This document shows positions 13,644 to 21,077 of a stretch of DNA of 64,000 bases, piece after piece. Below the pieces are notes generated by a model. It was given only the letters and a program-made list of their open reading frames with translations. It had not been told where the DNA came from and did no database searches. The number at the start of each line of letters is the position of its first letter. Positions within the stretch are counted from its first letter, which is position 1. This DNA comes from Monocercomonoides exilis PA203. Its lineage: Eukaryota; Protista; Preaxostyla. A program made the translations under genes and the position numbers. The stretch lies in the NCBI GenBank assembly GCA_001643675.2, contig LSRY02000003.1, forward strand, positions 806,001 to 870,000, written 5' to 3'.

Positions 13644-15313
13644 GTCGGGGAGTTAACCCGCTCAGGGTAGTAAACCCGCTCAGAAAAAGTGGAAAAAAAT
13701 GGGAATAAGATCACAAAGCTGAAGTTGAAGAAAAAAACTCAAGTTGCAAGATTGGCAGCATCCAGCGAAGCCAGGCTGTTGCATGATTCACACGAAAAGG
13801 GATTGTACATTCACCTTGTTTGCGGTCTTTCGAAATCTGCCATTGAAGAAGGGGGAGTGATTTCTCGACATTCGTTAAAAAGGGCTGAAAAAGCACAAAA
13901 CTGTGGAAGACCAAAAGGAAAACCTGGAAAGCTGTTAATTTTTTCGAAATCAGATGAACTGAGAATTGTTACAAAGATAGAGGTGGATGCAGAAAAGGGG
14001 ATTTATCATTCAAAGAAACAAATTGCAGAAATTGTGTGTTTGGAAAAGAATAATTTATGATCATTTAATTATTTATAATTCCCAGGCAAATGAAATAAGA
14101 ATGGAAAAGAGAAGCGATGGAGATGATATAATATGTGTTGATAAACACTGGCCAAATAGATTTTTATCGAGATATCCTGATCTAAAGCTGAAGCGTCCAA
14201 CACCTCTTCCAATTCATCGAGCTCTTCAAACATCAAAAGAAACAATTGCTCCATTCTTTGTCATGGTCACAAAATTTTTTGAAACGACCGAGGTCATTCC
14301 TCAGTTGTTTTTCAACTTGGATGAAACTTCTATGATTTTTTCTGAAAATCATTCATCAATTATTATCCCATCGACGTCCACAACTCCATCAATAATTCCT
14401 GAGCCATCTCTCCCAATGTTAACAAGCATAGTGTTTTTAACAAGCGCTGACGGGGTCAGGTATTTGGCTCCCATTATTATTCCATATTTAAATCTTCCTG
14501 AAGAATACAGAGAAGCCACGACTGAAACCGAGGTTTTTATCCCCAGCTCAAATGGTCATCTCTCTTCGAGCGGATTTGTAGAAGTTTTCCAAAAAGCTAT
14601 TTTGCCTAGGATGTTAAAAAAACGAACAGCGATCGGAAAAGCAGAGAAACATATCATTTAGATCATGGACGGAGGAACGGGCCATTTTTCACCAGAAGTT
14701 TTGAAGATATGCAAAGATAATTTAATTGATTTAATTCAACTTCCCTCACATACCACTCATCTTATTCAACCAAATGATCAGTACATTTTCGCGAATATGA
14801 AGAAAAATTTCAGCAAAGCAACGAATTGTGGAACATCAGCTTGTGCAAAAGATAGAAGAAAACTATTTGTTGAAGCTTTAAAGGATACATTTGCAATGGG
14901 AACTTTTCCGTCGACTATTCGAGCGAGTTGGAAAATCACAGGGTGGAATCCGTTCAACCCAGAGATTGTTTTGAGCATCATCACAGACAAACCCCCAGAA
15001 TGAAGCGAATCTATCAAAACATCTACCAAATGCATTGTAAATTCGAGATCTGGAAGAATTTTTTCTAGCTCTGATGATTTCTTCGAATTAACAAAATAAA
15101 ATAATGAACTGGATATTTAACACATTCGCATAGAAGTGTTCAGATTTTTACTCTGTTCCTATAGTATTTCATGATATTTTTTTGTAATAAGACTTTATTG
15201 ATTGCCTTTTTTGTTTTTTCTTTATTTTTTTTCACAAACAAATCAAAAAATGTTAAAAATATAAACTGATCAGGTGAGCAAGTTTACTCCCCTGAGCAGG
15301 TTAATTCCCCGAC
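13644..15313 (+). mobile_element. pogo/Fot1-like (DD35D) DNA transposon
   Basis: ~39-bp TIRs GTCGGGGAGTTAACCCGCTCAGGG... / ...CCCCTGAGCAGGTTAATTCCCCGAC, with TA on both sides. Confidence 0.92.
13689..15099 (+). pseudogene. pogo-family DDE_1 transposase with one intron (14034-14085) and two nonsense codons
   Basis: GRP and CENP-B-type HTH (HWPNRFLSRYPDL), FNLDET, MDGGTGH, PSHTTHLIQPND (DD35D). The GT-AG intron joins ...KKQIAEI|ANEIR... in frame. TAG at 14659 and TGA at 15001. Confidence 0.88.
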
Positions 15314-15314
15314 T

Positions 15315-17665
15315 AGAACTTGATTGATTTGATTGCATCAAGTGGCATTAGATCGGTCAACATACAATAAGATCGATCTAATGCCATTAAAATGCAGTCA
15401 AATTGGATGTGACTCAGTCACATCCGATCATTTCCATTCTGGGTTTCATGATCACTTTAAAAATATGTTTTTTGTGGGTCATTTCACTTGCTTGTTTCTC
15501 TTTTTTTCACAAAATGTCACAATCAACTTTTTTTTAGACATATTAGAGAGAGTGGAAAAGAGAAATACTATCACTGCACCAGTGCACATCGCTCCTTCAC
15601 CTGCAAAAAAAATCCCTCATCGAATCTGCTTGCAAATATATGAAAGTTGATAAAACTCATGCATTTTTCCGACTAACTGGATTTGCTCGCTTTGAATTTG
15701 ATTTGCTTTATCAGTTATTAAGCAAAGAAATCCCTCTTCATCGGGGAAAAGAAAAAACAATTGAAAAATTTGAGGATCAACTCTTTCTTCTTTTGAATTT
15801 TTTGCATCTTGGATTAACATCCTTCACTCATTTTCTCGTTTCCTCTTTTTATGGAACACAAAATTCAACAATTGAATTGCTTCATAGCATTGTTCAAAAT
15901 ATAAAAGTCAATCTGATCGATTTGTTTATCACATTTCGACCAGACAGATTAGATGATATGAGAGATGTGGGTGTTGTGGTTGACTGCACAGTTCTTCCAA
16001 TCAACAGACCAGCTGGAAGCTTGCAGTTTGGAACAAAATTCTACAGCGGGAAGCATCATATCTACTGCGTAAAGGCTGAAGTTGGTGTAAACCCGCGCAC
16101 CGGAACAGCCAGCACTGTCAGTTCCATTCACACCGGCTCAACACACGACTTTTCTATCTTCAAGGAGCATTTCCCACAATTTAAGGCGTAGCTTGGAGGG
16201 TCAAAAGTACTCGCAGACTCGGCATACATCGGGGCGAGGGCTGATTTGGATGCATATATTACGAAACCTGTTGGAACTCCTCAGCTAGCATCGCGGCGAG
16301 TCATAGTCGAGCGTTATTTAGGTCGTTTGAAGACTCTCTTCGCTGTCTTTCGCCACAATTGGCCATTTCAGGTCGAAAAGATTGCTGACTATTTCATTGT
16401 TACATGCGCATTGACAAACTTCCACATCCTTCACAACCCATTAACTGGACTTGACTGCGAAGCCAATCAGAGGTTCATCAATGAACTATACCTAATTACA
16501 ACAAGAAAAACAGAAGCAAGGAGACTTGTCAACGATAGATATCGGGCTAAACTTAAGGATAGACTCAACCCAGAGGCCTCTCCAACTTCTAGAATTACAG
16601 TTCTGCTTGCAGAAGAAGCTGGCGAGAATTTTTATTTCATACCCATATTATTCTTTATAACGTTTAATTTCTTCTTTTTCATATTTCAATAACCATAACT
16701 ATCTTTTTCAGGTGATTCTGATGACCAACAAACCCAAAATAGTGAAAAAGAAGAAAAAGAAGAAGAAAAAGAAGAAGAAAAAGAAGAAAAGGAAAAGAAA
16801 AAGAAAATTTCTATTGAAGAAAAAGAAAAAAGAAATGAATATATTATGTTGAATAGTGAAAATGATGAAATAGAAGATGAAAGAAATAATGTTGTTGGCA
16901 CATGGTTCATTCCGAACCAATGGAAAAGTCTTCGCCTTCTTCAACAATCTTCTTCTTCAACTTTTCCTTCTTCTTCATGTTCATCATTTGATGAAAAAAG
17001 AAAAAGAGTAAGTGAATCTCCTTCACAATCACTTCAAGCCAATAAAAAATGAGTTTTTTCATAATTTTTTTATATAAACATTCACCTTCATCACCTTTTT
17101 TGATAATCACAATACACTTTTGATGTTTTAGATAATATTTGTTTTTGTTGTTATTAAACATTCTAAAAAATATATGAAATTTTGATAAAAAATAGTTTTT
17201 AACTCTTTAAAGCTTAAAAAAAAATGAAAATATGAAATGAATGAAAATGAACATTAAAACAAACACGTATATGCAAATATTTAAAAATACATTCAAATAA
17301 GCTATTACTGTTGTTTTTTTTGTGAAAAATTTGGTAATCCTTACAAAAAATGCGTAAAAACTTGTTACAAATACATAGTATGAAAAACAGATAAAAGTGT
17401 AAAAACTAATCAAAAATGGCTTTTATAATATCTATTAAACACACATACCAAATATTGAAACACAACTAAAAACATTGGTGAAGAAATCAACAAAACAAAA
17501 AAAGTTAGGATCACAACACTCAAAACAAATTTAATTGATAATTCCGAAGCTGAAAACATGTGAGATTGATGAAATTCGATTAAAATTAGTTAAATTCGAT
17601 AAACCAGACATAAATCGATCTGACTGAGTCAAATTTTAGCGACTCAGTCAAATCAATCAAGTTCT
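15315..17665 (+). mobile_element. PHIS-supergroup (PIF/Harbinger-ISL2EU-like) DNA transposon, element 1
   Basis: TIRs AGAACTTGATTGATTTGA.../...TCAAATCAATCAAGTTCT. 3-bp TSD ACT at 15312-15314 and 17666-17668. Confidence 0.88.
15514..17052 (+). pseudogene. DDE_Tnp_4 (IS5/Harbinger-like) transposase, 2 exons, disrupted
   Basis: FFRLTGF HTH, VVDCT, FYSGKHH, GSTHD, LADSAYIG, RVIVERYLGRLK. Homopolymer frameshifts near the 5' end and TAG at 16189. A GC-AG intron at 16622-16711 restores frame into an exon ending ...WFIPNQWKS...ANKK*. Confidence 0.85.
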
Positions 17666-17671
17666 ACTATT

Positions 17672-20012
17672 AGAACTAAAACGAAATTATTTAGTAATGC
17701 GGTATTAGCTTCGACTAAGACCAAAAAGTGGTTCATAATACCAAAAAGATCGACTCAAAACCGATTTGATTAAGTCATGACCAATTTAACAAATTCTGGG
17801 TTTGTGATCTTTCTTCAGATATTTTCAAAAATATGGGTTTGATCAATTTTTTTGTTGTTGAAAAATTTTTTGATGTTACAATCTCCACTTTTGGATGTTT
17901 TGGAATGTGTTGAAAGAAGAAACGCAATACCTGAACATTTTGAATCAACGAAAAGAAAAGAAAACCTATCACTTATCGAATGTGCATACAAAGATGTGAA
18001 GGACCCATCTCGTGCATTCTTTCGACTCACGGGCTTTGTGCGATCAGAATTTGACATGTTACTAAGACTGCTTCCAGATGATTCACTTCCTCATCGGGGA
18101 AAGGCAAAAGCAATTAACACACTGGAAGAGCAATTATTTTTGCTTTTGAATGTTCTCCATCACGGCTCTTGCACCCTCACAAACATACTTGCATCAAAAA
18201 AACTTCACTCTCAAAGTGCGACTGTAAGACTGCTTCATTCCATTGTGTCTCGGCTTCGAGCGCCTTTGGCCGATCTTTTTCTGTCTTTCCGCAAAGACAG
18301 AATAGAGAGCATGAAGGATGTTGGAATAGTGCTTGATTGCACTGTGATTCCGACTAACCGACCAGGGGGTCGATTGGAATATGGAAAAAAGTTCTTTAGT
18401 GGAAAACACCATATTTACTGTGTCAAGGCAGAAGTGGGTGTTAACCCAAAGGTTGGCAGAGCAAGCACCATTAGCGCTATTTACTCAGGCTCCACGCATG
18501 ACTATGTTATATTCAAAGAGCATTATCCGTTGTTTGAATCGAAACTGGAGGGATCCAAAATTCAAGTTGATTCTGCATATATTGGTGCCAGACCAGACCT
18601 TGACGTTATCATAACAAAGCCCGTTGGCACACAGGAGCTTGCTTCCCATCGTGTAATAGTTGAAAGGTTCTTTGGAAGGATGAAAACACTCTTCTCCATC
18701 TTTCGCAAACCATGGATATTCGAAACTGATCGAATAGCTGACTATTTCAATGTGGCTTGCTGCCTAACTAATTTTCATATTCTTCATAATCCACTCACTG
18801 CGATTGACTCACAAGCAAATTCAAGATTTTTGGATGGAATGATAAGCGATTATCTTCGAAAACAGGAAGCAAAGAGCCTCGCAAATGAAAGATACCTTGC
18901 CAGATTAAGAAATAAACTTAATCCAAAAGATTCATTAACTCCCACAATTACGTCTTTAACTGCAGAATCAACAAGTTTTTTGAACACTTAAATACCCATA
19001 TTGCATTTATTTTCTGATTTATTGACTTTATTTTCCTTCTCGTTACCCACATTTAAGTTTTATTTTATTTTAGATAGCTCAGATGAGACATACGCAATGT
19101 CAAAAGCCAAAGAAAGAAGAGAAAATGAACAAGAGAAAGTAATGATCCAAAGAGAGCAGCAGACATCAGATTTGCTGAGTAGGGGAAGGGACGAGCACAA
19201 CATTCAGCCTCAAAATACTGATAATTCTTTGTCATGGTTTATCCCAAATCAATGGAAATCTGTAAGCACACTTTTTCCTCCTTCATCACAACAGTTTCCT
19301 TCAATTCCATCATCTTCCTCATCCGCTTCGTCATCTTCAACACAAAATTCAACCAGAAAACCTAATCAAACACAACTTCAGTTTTTACTGAATTGTCAAC
19401 ATTAGAACTGTTTTAATTATTATTTTTCCTCTATTGTTCAGACACCTCAAAAAATAATATAACAATGAACAGTTTTGAAAATTTTCATTTTTTTCTTGTT
19501 AAAAATAAAAAAACAATAAATTTCGTCATTGAAAAAACTCTTGTTTTGTTGTTTTCATAAAAAAGCTTAACAAACAATATTGAAATGTAAATTTATTTGT
19601 GAAAAACAAAAAAATCGCAATTAACAATAAATGGAAAGCTTCAGAGTTATATGGGGAAAACATATTCACTCCGTTTTTAAATTATAAAACTCTCACATCA
19701 TAAAAAAACGAAAACATTAGAGATAAAAATGTCACAGAATCAGAGTGAAAGATGATAATCTAACACTTCATAAATGTGTCGCTAACATATTATAATTACT
19801 GATTCCAGCGTTTCAAAACTTTGATCGTTGTATTTCATAAGAAATAATAAAGATATGAAAAATTATGATCAGATAAAAAACATATAAAGAATTTTCTAAA
19901 GATCAAAAAAAATAGACATTAAACCGTTTTGATTGAGTCGAAACGGAAATAATTGATTAAATACGAATTTGCAATAACAATACGAATTGACCAGATAAAT
20001 TCAGAAAAGTTC
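17672..20012 (+). mobile_element. PHIS-supergroup DNA transposon, element 2 (sister family)
   Basis: Left end AGAACTAAAACGAAATTAT. Right end ATAAATTCAGAAAAGTTC is an imperfect TIR lacking the terminal T. ATT on both sides (17669-17671, 20013-20015). Confidence 0.8.
17873..19405 (+). CDS. Intact DDE_Tnp_4 transposase, join(17873..18974,19074..19405), ~477 aa
   Basis: FFRLTGF, VLDCT, FFSGKHH, GSTHD, QVDSAYIG, HRVIVERFFGRMK. Phase-1 GT-AG intron at 18975-19073, the same position as in element 1. Exon 2 contains WFIPNQWKS. Confidence 0.88.
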
Positions 20013-20015
20013 ATT

Positions 20016-20984
20016 AGAACTTGATTGATTTGACTGCGTCAAGTGGCATTAGATCGGTCAACATCCAATAAGATCGATCTAATGCCATTGAGACGCAGTC
20101 AAATTGGATGTGACTCAGTCACATCCGATCATTTCCATTCTGGGTGTCATGATCAAAATATTTTTGTAAAAAAATTATAATTTAAATCAATAAATTGCGT
20201 TATATTTAATATCATTTTGATTGAATTTTAGAATTTTTCATTCTTAATAGTTTTTTATTCTTTAAGTTTTTTAAAATTATTGCAATTATTCTGAAAAACC
20301 TGGAAATTCTAATTATTTTTATTTGAGAATAATTACTGGTGATAAATTATAATGTTACAAGAAATTTTCATTTCATTTTTCAATATTTAGAACTTGTTTC
20401 ATTTGTTTTTAACATATCTCAATAATTTTCAGAAAAATGAAAAAACACAAAAAAGAATTAATGAAATCACATTTTCTTTTTGTTTTTTATTCGATATGCA
20501 AAAATATCGAAAAACGATTGAGTTTGAAACACACAACATTGAAGAAAATAAAAAATGAGAAATTTATATAATTATGTTGAAAATTTTCAAAAAAAATGAA
20601 TATGAAAATGTAAAAAATGTATTATATTTACAGTTTCATCTCGATTTGAGTTGAAAAAGTTCGTTGCAGAGTCGCAATGATAAATAAATCAAGTTTTCAA
20701 ATTGCTGAATTAAACAAAGAAAACAACATAAAATCAAACGAATATCAAAAAAATGTATTTTATACAATAATATATTGAAAATTCAACGTTAATGAACTTG
20801 AAATAATAAAAATATTAACAAAACAAAAAAATGCTTGATCACATGTTGTGATCATAAAAATCACAATTTCGCCCTTGGCGAGATTGAGGGAAATTCGATA
20901 AAAATTAGCAAAATTCGATAGACAAGATAAAAATCGATTTGACTGAGTCAAATTTTCGCGACTCGGTCAAATCAATCAAGTTCT
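20016..20984 (+). mobile_element. Non-autonomous derivative of the PHIS element 1 family (element 3)
   Basis: The first ~140 bp are nearly identical to 15315-15453. The 3' end matches ~17600-17665. TSD ATT at 20013-20015 and 20985-20987. AT-rich non-coding interior. Confidence 0.88.
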
Positions 20985-20993
20985 ATTTCATTA

Positions 20994-21077
20994 GCAAGGA
21001 TGGCCGAGTGGTCCAAGGCGGTGGATTTAAGCTCCCCTATCCGTATGGATGCGTGGGTTCGAACCCCACTCCTTGCA
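20994..21077 (+). tRNA. tRNA-Leu (anticodon TAA)
   Basis: Acceptor stem GCAAGGA/TCCTTGC plus discriminator A. A-box TGGCCGAGTGG. Anticodon loop TTTAAGC (TAA at 21028-21030). Long variable arm. T arm GTGGG-TTCGAAC-CCCAC. One T:C mismatch in the anticodon stem. Confidence 0.93.

Follow-up and report, generated by a model that had tools for sequence, protein, structure and literature searches.

Within the window analysed here, a 64,000-nucleotide stretch of Monocercomonoides exilis DNA, a stack of four transposable elements lies at a tRNA gene, and two of these elements encode the same nine-residue peptide, WFIPNQWKS, in the second exon of their transposase genes. The first-pass annotation of this DNA proposed that the peptide (hereafter the W motif) tethers the transposase to TFIIIB, TFIIIC or Pol III. 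Retrotransposons are well known to reach Pol III genes by tethered "safe-haven" integration, and the means by which a cut-and-paste DNA transposase might reach such sites are, to our knowledge, not known. The question raised by this locus is whether the W motif sets the target of these elements and, if it does not, which part of the transposase is the better candidate.

The element stack and the spliced transposase tail

The stack and its parts, in order along the window, are as follows.

13689..15100 (+), pogo-like (DDE_1) transposase, decayed, the stack member farthest from the tRNA gene, with a different C-terminal motif of its own
15314..17666 (+), element A, a dead autonomous PIF/Harbinger-type copy (DDE_Tnp_4) of the WFIPNQWKSL subfamily, with terminal inverted repeats (TIRs) TAGAACTTGATTGATTTGA and its inverse
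16622..16711 (+), intron of element A, 90 nt, phase 1, with in-frame stops inside
16712..17052 (+), exon 2 of element A, the tail, 112 aa and stop
16903..16929 (+), W motif of copy A, WFIPNQWKS by translation
17017..17049 (+), C-terminal motif of element A, decayed to SPSQSLQANKK (SPLQSLLANKK in intact sister copies)
17670..20014 (+), element B, an apparently intact autonomous copy with an open DDE exon; ends approximate to a few bases
17873..18974 (+), exon 1 of element B, N-terminal HTH region and DDE_Tnp_4 catalytic domain (PF13359, E 4e-21)
18975..19073 (+), intron of element B, 99 nt, phase 1, donor A/GTTTTT, acceptor TTTTAG/
19074..19405 (+), exon 2 of element B, the tail, 109 aa and stop
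19085..19195 (+), charged K/E/R-rich spacer of element B, probably a single long helix by homology to that of public model P0007; limits approximate
19235..19261 (+), W motif of copy B, WFIPNQWKS by translation
19364..19402 (+), C-terminal LxxLL-like motif of element B, NQTQLQFLLNCQH (NQTPLQFLL in the copy on contig C1)
20015..20985 (+), element C, non-autonomous, 971 bp, with A-type ends, the stack member nearest the tRNA gene
20994..21077 (+), tRNA-Leu(UAA) gene, 8 nt beyond the end of element C

Element A is inactivated by an in-frame TAG at about 16189, which breaks its DDE_Tnp_4 domain into two ORF pieces, by N-terminal stops, and by a splice donor that reads GCGAGA where sister copies have GCGTGA. 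Element B has a near-twin (98% identical) on contig C1 that abuts tRNA-Thr. The ATG of its exon 1 is the start of public model P0001, and its unspliced ORF ends at an in-frame TAA inside the intron. Both domain content and element ends place the family in the PIF/Harbinger superfamily (PHIS): PF13359 was matched at full length in copy B and in part in both copy A pieces, TIRs are present in the window, and 3-bp target site duplications flank three L043-type copies. No second ORF for a Myb/SANT-like protein, with either a family match or a sensible size, was found in the 2.35-kb elements. Some PHIS groups likewise carry a single ORF, so the missing second ORF is compatible with membership of the superfamily.

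That the tail is spliced to the DDE exon, as first annotated, agreed with the comparison of subfamilies: exon 2 appears to belong to the transposase, since a phase-1 intron occupies the same position and the frame is restored in every subfamily. Intron lengths were 90, 92, 93, 97-99 and 102-105 nt. Donors read GTTTAT or GCTTAT, similar to the host consensus GTTTG of the TBP genes, and several subfamilies use GC instead of GT. A concern that the GTTTAT donors were non-consensus was dropped because the host TBP introns use GTTTG. Among public gene models, P0006 and P0007 have exactly these junctions, P0001 and P0008 are unspliced, and P0010, P0012 and P0013 splice the W motif out. The two exons were searched separately, and P0006 and P0007 were the only spliced proteins used. 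This gene structure shows a W motif predicted to be translated in frame with the transposase.

Spread, selection and structure of the W motif

The 27-nt stretches at 16903-16929 and 19235-19261 both translate to WFIPNQWKS, and they differ by the five synonymous codon changes described in the first-pass annotation (ttc/ttt, att/atc, ccg/cca, aac/aat and agt/tct). The peptide had been called invariant, which holds between the two subfamilies in the window but not across the family, where W1, P4, Q6 and W7 alone are invariant, S9 is nearly so in the family alignment, and WFIPNQWKS is one form of W-x-[ILV]-P-x-Q-W-[KRDE]-[SA]. At least 13 subfamilies of the single-ORF PIF/Harbinger (DDE_Tnp_4) transposons in M. 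exilis carry this motif. A genome search for WFIPNQW as a degenerate DNA pattern, suggested at first annotation, gave 12 matches against 0 for the reversed control. A relaxed pattern ending in K gave 61 matches against 0 and one ending in D/E gave 17 against 0. Because these patterns together had 78 matches against 0 in controls, a chance origin of the W motif is excluded. For 51 of the 61 K-type matches, a scored DDE match lay upstream on the same strand, 247-861 nt away.

Exon 2 had otherwise been described as unalignable, and this did not stand. The DDE exons of A and B are 58% identical and their tails 31% identical over 67 aa, with about half of the tail identities contributed by the motif, but further conserved parts were recognised. 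Exon 2 has an acidic beginning, contains a charged stretch whose length is conserved as well as an x-F-P-x mini-motif, and carries a conserved P-L-Q-x-L-L at its C-terminus. As judged from homology searches, the tail is lineage-specific. Close homologues were all from M. exilis, and P0014, the nearest relative outside the lineage, ends without a tail. A W motif profile run against 1.84 billion proteins returned only M. exilis and a translated junk repeat, and an ESM Atlas look-alike search with the tail as query gave no usable match.

Selection on the peptide, which the first reading had deduced from the codon differences, was confirmed by a pN/pS of 0.25 in the motif against 0.85-0.91 in its flanks, at saturated synonymous sites. 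In 12 subfamily representatives there was no nonsynonymous change at W1, P4, Q6 or W7 (pS ~0.9), and the motif was written with three Pro codons, two Gln codons and five Leu/Ile codons. The W motif is held by purifying selection in every subfamily, whether at tRNA genes or not. These data also bear on the reading in which the motif lies outside any protein, or exon 2 and the DDE exon are not joined by splicing, and the conservation reflects a DNA or RNA element or chance. The GC donors of several subfamilies and the public models that stop in the intron would fit such a reading. However, it is scarcely credible given that the amino acids are kept though synonymous sites are saturated, that the frame is restored over introns whose lengths are not multiples of three, that the donors match the host consensus, and that the motif patterns were missing from the controls.

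The W motif is thus nine residues long, with four invariant positions and unconserved flanks, in a disordered terminal tail. In 12 subfamilies it begins 51-65 aa from the start of exon 2. We modelled P0007 with AF2 from a 25-row alignment, in which the catalytic core was poor (mean pLDDT 52). The stretch homologous to the spacer was predicted as a helix at residues 227-262 (pLDDT 82-92), the W motif as disordered (pLDDT ~45), and the C-terminal motif as a helix at low confidence. In 11 subfamilies this last motif shows the L-x-x-L-L sequence pattern of NR-box-like motifs, which are short amphipathic helices that fit into a groove of a partner domain. The tail is built of modules. Its acidic beginning leads into a probable charged helix, about 40 residues long with its length conserved, and then into the W motif. 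The x-F-P-x mini-motif and a poly-Ser stretch come next, and most subfamilies add a basic patch and, at the end, a putative [ST]-[PV]-L-[QRE]-x-L-L helix.

Association of the tail motifs with tRNA genes

We sampled about 70 of the more than 250 copies. At 11 loci the element ended 3-9 nt upstream of the mature tRNA 5' end, and the distance from stop codon to tRNA was 613-627 nt. The genes used were those for tRNA-Leu, Thr, Ala, Arg, Asn, Phe, Tyr, Val and Gly, all intact with the elements upstream, and insertion showed a strong orientation bias with one site reused. A whole-genome RF00005 search scored 63 genes, too few for a tRNA map.

Four subfamilies that carry the W motif, forming two separate clades, had a tRNA gene beside none of their 19 copies. 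These copies had unique flanking DNA and 3-bp duplications (ATT/AAT); those at the three dispersed L043-type copies were ATT, AAT and ATT. An Rfam search of 20 loci without a tRNA gene found no other RNA gene. The motif therefore occurs in families not associated with tRNA genes, a result that the first-pass annotation had said would count against its proposal, and its role as the determinant of tRNA or Pol III targeting was not supported by the comparison. A tether to TFIIIB, TFIIIC or Pol III formed by the W motif alone, in the manner of the Ty1 and Ty5 integrase tails, would suit a short motif that is under selection and lies in a disordered C-terminal tail, and a lineage in which integration 3-9 nt upstream of tRNA genes is seen for most members. 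It is nevertheless very improbable in view of these 19 copies, and of the pogo-like elements that sit in the same stacks without such a motif. A peptide held in common with the pogo-like stack neighbours was considered and rejected; the pogo-like tails end in a different motif.

The C-terminal motif [ST]-[PV]-L-[QRE]-x-L-L behaved differently from the W motif. It was found in every tRNA-abutting subfamily, and no reading frame of the four non-tRNA subfamilies encoded it. Conversely, every subfamily that keeps it has tRNA-abutting copies, and a prediction made on this basis for the P0005-type subfamily came true. Its pN/pS was 0.29, against 0.86 just upstream. Since the W motif is also present in the non-tRNA relatives, the C-terminal motif is the better targeting candidate. 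In the tree, the two non-tRNA clades were nested separately among tRNA-linked ones (support 96/93 and 100/100); the correlation between tail and target draws on two independent evolutionary events, and the tree is rooted by an outgroup on a very long branch.

Three of the four non-tRNA subfamilies have D/E rather than K/R at position 8 of the W motif, and one of these has a longer spacer too, so changes in the W motif could be part of the reason for the different target. The K versus D/E difference was rejected as a targeting discriminator because L070-type copies, which have K, were found away from tRNA genes. We also weighed a bipartite tether, in which the Pol III machinery (TFIIIB, TFIIIC or Pol III) would be bound by the W motif and the C-terminal LxxLL-like helix jointly, neither being dispensable, while the clades without the helix would have lost targeting and kept an altered W motif for a residual or new interaction. 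The comparable purifying selection on the two motifs, their joint presence in all tRNA-linked subfamilies and the change at position 8 are consistent with this arrangement, and the conserved spacer length suggests that the geometry with respect to the active site is constrained. On the other side, the L070-type elements, with K at position 8 and a normal core, are away from tRNA genes, and the W, P, Q and W of the core have stayed invariant long after targeting was lost in two clades, which argues for a function independent of tRNA genes. We consider joint binding rather unlikely.

A candidate Pol III tether and its relation to known systems

Our preferred reading, to which we assign a probability of roughly 0.55, is that the W motif is a general docking short linear motif that does not set the target alone, and that the terminal LxxLL-like helix is the best candidate for a Pol III tether. 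The W motif would dock a partner needed by every member of the lineage. This partner could be another protomer, or a host factor that serves nuclear entry or the assembly of the transpososome. Such docking may compensate for the absent Myb-like second protein of canonical Harbingers, and by itself it would not determine where the element goes. The terminal helix would be the part that contacts the Pol III pre-initiation complex. A more elaborate version, which we offer tentatively, is a modular targeting arm with two docking peptides, kept at a fixed distance from the active site by a rigid charged helix. At tRNA starts the terminal basic LxxLL helix would engage the Pol III pre-initiation complex, the W motif would bind a second, general cofactor in place of the lost Myb-like partner, and loss of the LxxLL helix in two clades would have produced dispersed integrators. 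If this arm were real, the determinant would be identified and transferable.

These elements provide a natural experiment, in which sister subfamilies with a common catalytic core and W motif differ in a terminal peptide and in location at tRNA starts. Because the sisters differ in this one peptide and in tRNA location, the determinant can now be sought within a helix of about 10 residues and a motif of nine. The comparison also corrects the first reading of the locus: target choice does not follow the conserved peptide that catches the eye first. For a DDE transposase, a targeting peptide that is small and can be transferred would be of interest to developers of site-directed integration tools.

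The closest parallels for the tail are in retrotransposons. The targeting domain of Ty5 integrase binds Sir4, and the C-terminal region of Ty1 integrase binds the Pol III subunit AC40. The M. exilis transposases resemble these integrases in having a short motif in a disordered C-terminal tail with proposed tethering to a chromatin-bound host protein. They differ in being cut-and-paste DDE_Tnp_4 enzymes, whereas Ty1 and Ty5 are retrotransposons with proven partners. The expected association of motif with target fails for the W motif and holds for the C-terminal LxxLL-like motif. Ty3, an LTR retrotransposon, integrates at Pol III start sites via TFIIIB (Brf1/TBP), and we know of no defined short targeting peptide in it. 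Like Ty3, the M. exilis elements insert a few bases from the tRNA transcription start with strong orientation bias and reuse of one site, but their stacks are built by DNA transposons.

Among DNA transposons, Dada elements of another superfamily are associated with tRNA and other small-RNA genes (PMC3706591, PMC8869645) and insert inside the RNA genes at specific sequences (PMC3706591). The M. exilis elements, in contrast, carry DDE_Tnp_4 and lie upstream of intact tRNA genes, and so are not Dada elements. They have DDE_Tnp_4, TIRs and 3-bp target duplications in common with canonical PIF/Harbinger transposons such as Harbinger3_DR and Ping/Pong (PMC9392472). Canonical Harbingers depend on a Myb-like second protein to enter the nucleus and to bind the element ends (PMC9392472), and they have no long tail, whereas the M. 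exilis elements combine one ORF with a spliced tail of 100-225 aa, three conserved islands in it and, in most subfamilies, targeting to tRNA starts.

The transposon stack at tRNA-Leu(UAA)

The window belongs to the ONT genome assembly of Monocercomonoides exilis, an oxymonad (82,301,135 bases, 101 contigs; PMC8767320). A stack of DNA transposons occupies 13.6-21.1 kb of the window, and its near end lies 8 nt before the start of a tRNA-Leu(UAA) gene.

Members of the stack, from the far end to the tRNA gene
Farthest from the tRNA: decayed pogo-like (DDE_1) element
15314-17666: element A, second from the far end
about 17670-20014: element B, between A and C
20015-20985: element C, non-autonomous, 971 bp, A-type ends, tRNA-proximal
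20994-21077: tRNA-Leu(UAA) gene

The transposases of elements A and B, both of the DDE_Tnp_4 (PIF/Harbinger) type, are 58% identical. Element A is dead: besides stops in the N-terminal region, a TAG at about 16189 interrupts its reading frame. The transposase frame of element B is open.

The W motif and the splicing of its exon

Translation confirmed the peptide WFIPNQWKS in exon 2 of both elements (16903-16929 in A, 19235-19261 in B), with five synonymous codon differences between the two 27-nt sites. The first-pass annotation had called exon 2 otherwise unalignable. Outside the peptide the two tails (the exon 2 products) are only about 20% identical. The description is nevertheless only partly right, as further conserved tail elements exist beside the peptide. 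We term its general form, W-x-[ILV]-P-x-Q-W-[KRDE]-[SA], the W motif.

A degenerate DNA pattern for WFIPNQW gave 12 matches genome-wide, against 0 for the reversed control. The relaxed pattern W-x-x-P-x-Q-W-K, with T at the second base of the third codon, gave 61 matches and the same pattern with a D/E ending gave 17, each against 0 for the control; the latter include two unrelated sequences (L067, L068) and one decayed, unclassified copy (L069). Most K-type matches (51/61) lie 247-861 nt downstream of a same-strand scored DDE match, and the remainder adjoin copies unscored by the DDE search. The recurrence of the W motif is far from chance. Genome-wide, the transposase has at least 108 scored copies, 48-100% identical to that of B.

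Representatives of 12 subfamilies could be aligned without gaps around the W motif, with W1, P4, Q6 and W7 fixed, S9 nearly fixed, I/L/V/F at position 3, K/R or D/E at position 8, and positions 2 and 5 freely variable. At a synonymous distance of about 0.8, pN/pS was 0.25 over the nine motif codons versus 0.85-0.91 in the in-register flanks, and the four fixed positions showed no nonsynonymous change even though Pro is encoded by three different codons and Gln by both of its codons. This contrast indicates that the W motif is constrained at the protein level. In decayed copies the motif is eroded as well (P→Q, W→L, W→stop).

The evidence for splicing is comparative, with the two exons searched separately. 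Beyond the end of DDE homology, every subfamily has 90-105 nt of T-rich sequence (371 nt in a single copy that carries an insertion), with a phase-1 donor at a homologous codon (A/GTTTAT, G/GTTTGT or G/GCTTAT, the slash marking the junction) and a phase-1 acceptor (TTTTAG/ or TTCAG/) just before the acidic start of the tail. Many intron lengths are not divisible by three (92, 97, 98, 103, 104), which shifts the W motif by +1 or +2 with respect to the DDE frame, and the common junction restores the frame in each subfamily despite these differences. Together with the pN/pS contrast, this supports the earlier proposal that a spliced and translated peptide is under selection.

M. exilis introns are reported as canonical GT-AG with a mean of 124 nt (PMC6759080). 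Host TBP introns start GTTTG, GTTAT, GTGTG or GTATG, and the tail-intron donors are consistent with the host consensus; a GC donor is required in several subfamilies. In the public M. exilis gene models P0006 and P0007, both splice sites coincide exactly with those predicted, and P0002 shares the acceptor; P0001 and P0008 terminate inside the intron. In about ten copies (L024, L025, L029, L032, L034, L035, L043-L045, L052) the intron is open in frame over 90-102 nt with an F/I/L-rich reading, giving ORFs of 507-589 aa. The W-motif segment is spliced out of P0010, P0012 and P0013, public models of the P0005-type subfamily; among the genomic copies compared (L047-L051), L047 retains the motif in one open frame. 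The omission is either an annotation artefact from pseudogene stops or an alternative, motif-less isoform. An unspliced copy B message would reach a stop 5 codons into the intron, and intron retention could therefore give a tail-less transposase.

Tail architecture and association with tRNA genes

The tail opens at the acceptor with acidic residues (DSDD, SSDE) and continues through a stretch rich in K, E and R to the W motif, which D-N-S-x-x often precedes. An x-F-P-x-F/P mini-motif comes 10-15 residues further on, followed by poly-Ser. Most subfamilies have a basic patch and then an LxxLL-like motif at the extreme C-terminus, [ST]-[PV]-L-[QRE]-x-L-L-x(2-6)-stop. Twelve subfamilies place the W motif 51-65 aa from the exon start, and one places it at 88-92 aa. 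AF2 folds the core of P0007 poorly (mean pLDDT 52) but models the charged stretch as a single helix (residues 227-262, pLDDT 82-92). It leaves the W motif unstructured (pLDDT about 45) and gives the final nine residues as a low-confidence helix. Locus L016 (G000:C22:1125822-1129952, in the M. exilis genome) and P0002 are recombinant, with a DDE exon 88% identical to B-type and an L034-type tail (WCLPGQWKS...PLRLLL); tails appear to have been exchanged between subfamilies.

Copies of the A, B, L017, L024, L032/34, L041 and P0005 types have 3' ends 3-9 nt from a tRNA, with 613-627 nt between stop codon and tRNA in 3'-abutting copies. One L019 copy is inverted, with its 5' end against a tRNA, and L021 and L075 adjoin degenerate tRNA-like sequences. 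Other copies of these subfamilies adjoin further transposon ends and therefore lie inside stacks. With about 153 tRNA genes predicted for this genome, a figure from the earlier 74.7-Mb 454 assembly (PMC6759080), chance adjacency is negligible.

The tRNA-like sequences flanking L021 (206-289, - strand), L075 and L079 were not called by ARAGORN; that of L021 scored 16.9 bits against Rfam, below threshold, and that of L079, as in a Pol III gene, terminates in a run of T. These sequences may represent tRNA genes that are decayed or of unusual form. Facing copy pairs also occur a few kb apart in the genome. The pair at C37:336847 (+) and C37:339171 (-) brackets two divergent tRNA-Arg genes; that at C17:784658 (+) and C17:792642 (-) is an L070-type inverted duplication, with no tRNA seen within the fetched parts.

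W-motif-bearing subfamilies with no tRNA in fetched flanks
L043-type: WFLPDQWES, 9 copies
L070-type: WHLP[FS]QWKS, 5 copies
L039-type: WHLPMQWDS, 4 copies
L031: WHLPLQWDA, 1 copy

The first-pass annotation had proposed that the W motif may tether the transposase to TFIIIB, TFIIIC or Pol III, to be checked by correlating motif matches with tRNA adjacency. No such correlation was found: in these four subfamilies, 0/19 copies had a tRNA in the fetched flanks. Copies with definable ends lie in unique AT-rich DNA, three of the L043-type between clean 3-bp duplications (ATT, AAT, ATT). Because all four retain the W core, the motif is insufficient for tRNA targeting, and the targeting role is unsupported as proposed. 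Its persistence in clades that do not target tRNA genes suggests a W-motif function independent of those genes. Position 8 (K/R versus D/E) was rejected as a targeting discriminator, as the unlinked L070-type has K.

The terminal L-[QRE]-x-L-L is present in all tRNA-linked subfamilies and was not found in any reading frame of the four unlinked ones. For the P0005-type, whose long divergent tail ends TLEFLL/VLEYLL, a tRNA link was predicted before the flanks were seen. Of five 3' ends fetched, one lies at tRNA-Phe, one at a tRNA-like gene with a terminal T-run, and three adjoin termini of other stack-forming elements. A maximum-likelihood tree built on the DDE exon splits the unlinked subfamilies into two clades, L031+L039 (support 96/93) and L070+L043 (100/100), each nested among LxxLL-bearing, tRNA-linked lineages. 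If the root is as placed by a very distant outgroup, there were two independent co-losses of terminal motif and tRNA link. Across 11 subfamilies pN/pS was 0.29 in the terminal motif versus 0.86 just upstream, indicating that this motif is itself under selection. Our preferred reading, at a probability of roughly 0.55, is that the W motif serves the tail as a general docking site and that targeting is determined by the terminal LxxLL-like helix. The alternative of a bipartite tether, both motifs acting together, is compatible with their joint presence in tRNA-linked tails; with the W core also kept by the unlinked clades, we consider it less likely.

A different C-terminus is conserved in the pogo-like elements of the same stacks: LP-x-PPEWA followed by G-x-Φ-Y-x-SSDD-Φ-x-[DE]-Φ-Φ-stop (window 14980-15100; L002, L010, L024, L025). 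It lacks the W motif and closes with a hydrophobic Φ-x-x-Φ-Φ, only a weak parallel to LxxLL.

Host factors and comparison with known elements

A word-indexed search returned M. exilis proteins only, plus one 27%-identical protein, tail-less at its end. An exhaustive profile search with the W-motif region found only M. exilis apart from P0015 and P0016, rejected as translated tandem repeats (NCHAWYIPQQC) irrelevant to the motif, and an Atlas search found nothing. Homology thus gave no function. A Brf1 gene and two TBP paralogues were located in the genome (L054-L056 on contigs C16 and C27; L057/L058 on C36). The TBP paralogues share an intron layout, with donors mostly GTTTG; Brf1 has a very long low-complexity C-terminal half and an intron that apparently starts GTATGG.

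The motifs of the tail, and the way only one of them follows tRNA linkage, are what is new here. Canonical Harbingers depend on a Myb-like partner both for import of the transposase and for binding to the element ends (PMC9392472). In contrast, the M. exilis elements have no second ORF, and thus the tail may have taken over part of this role. Dada elements, known tRNA-associated DNA transposons of another superfamily, insert inside the genes (PMC3706591), whereas the M. exilis elements sit beside them.
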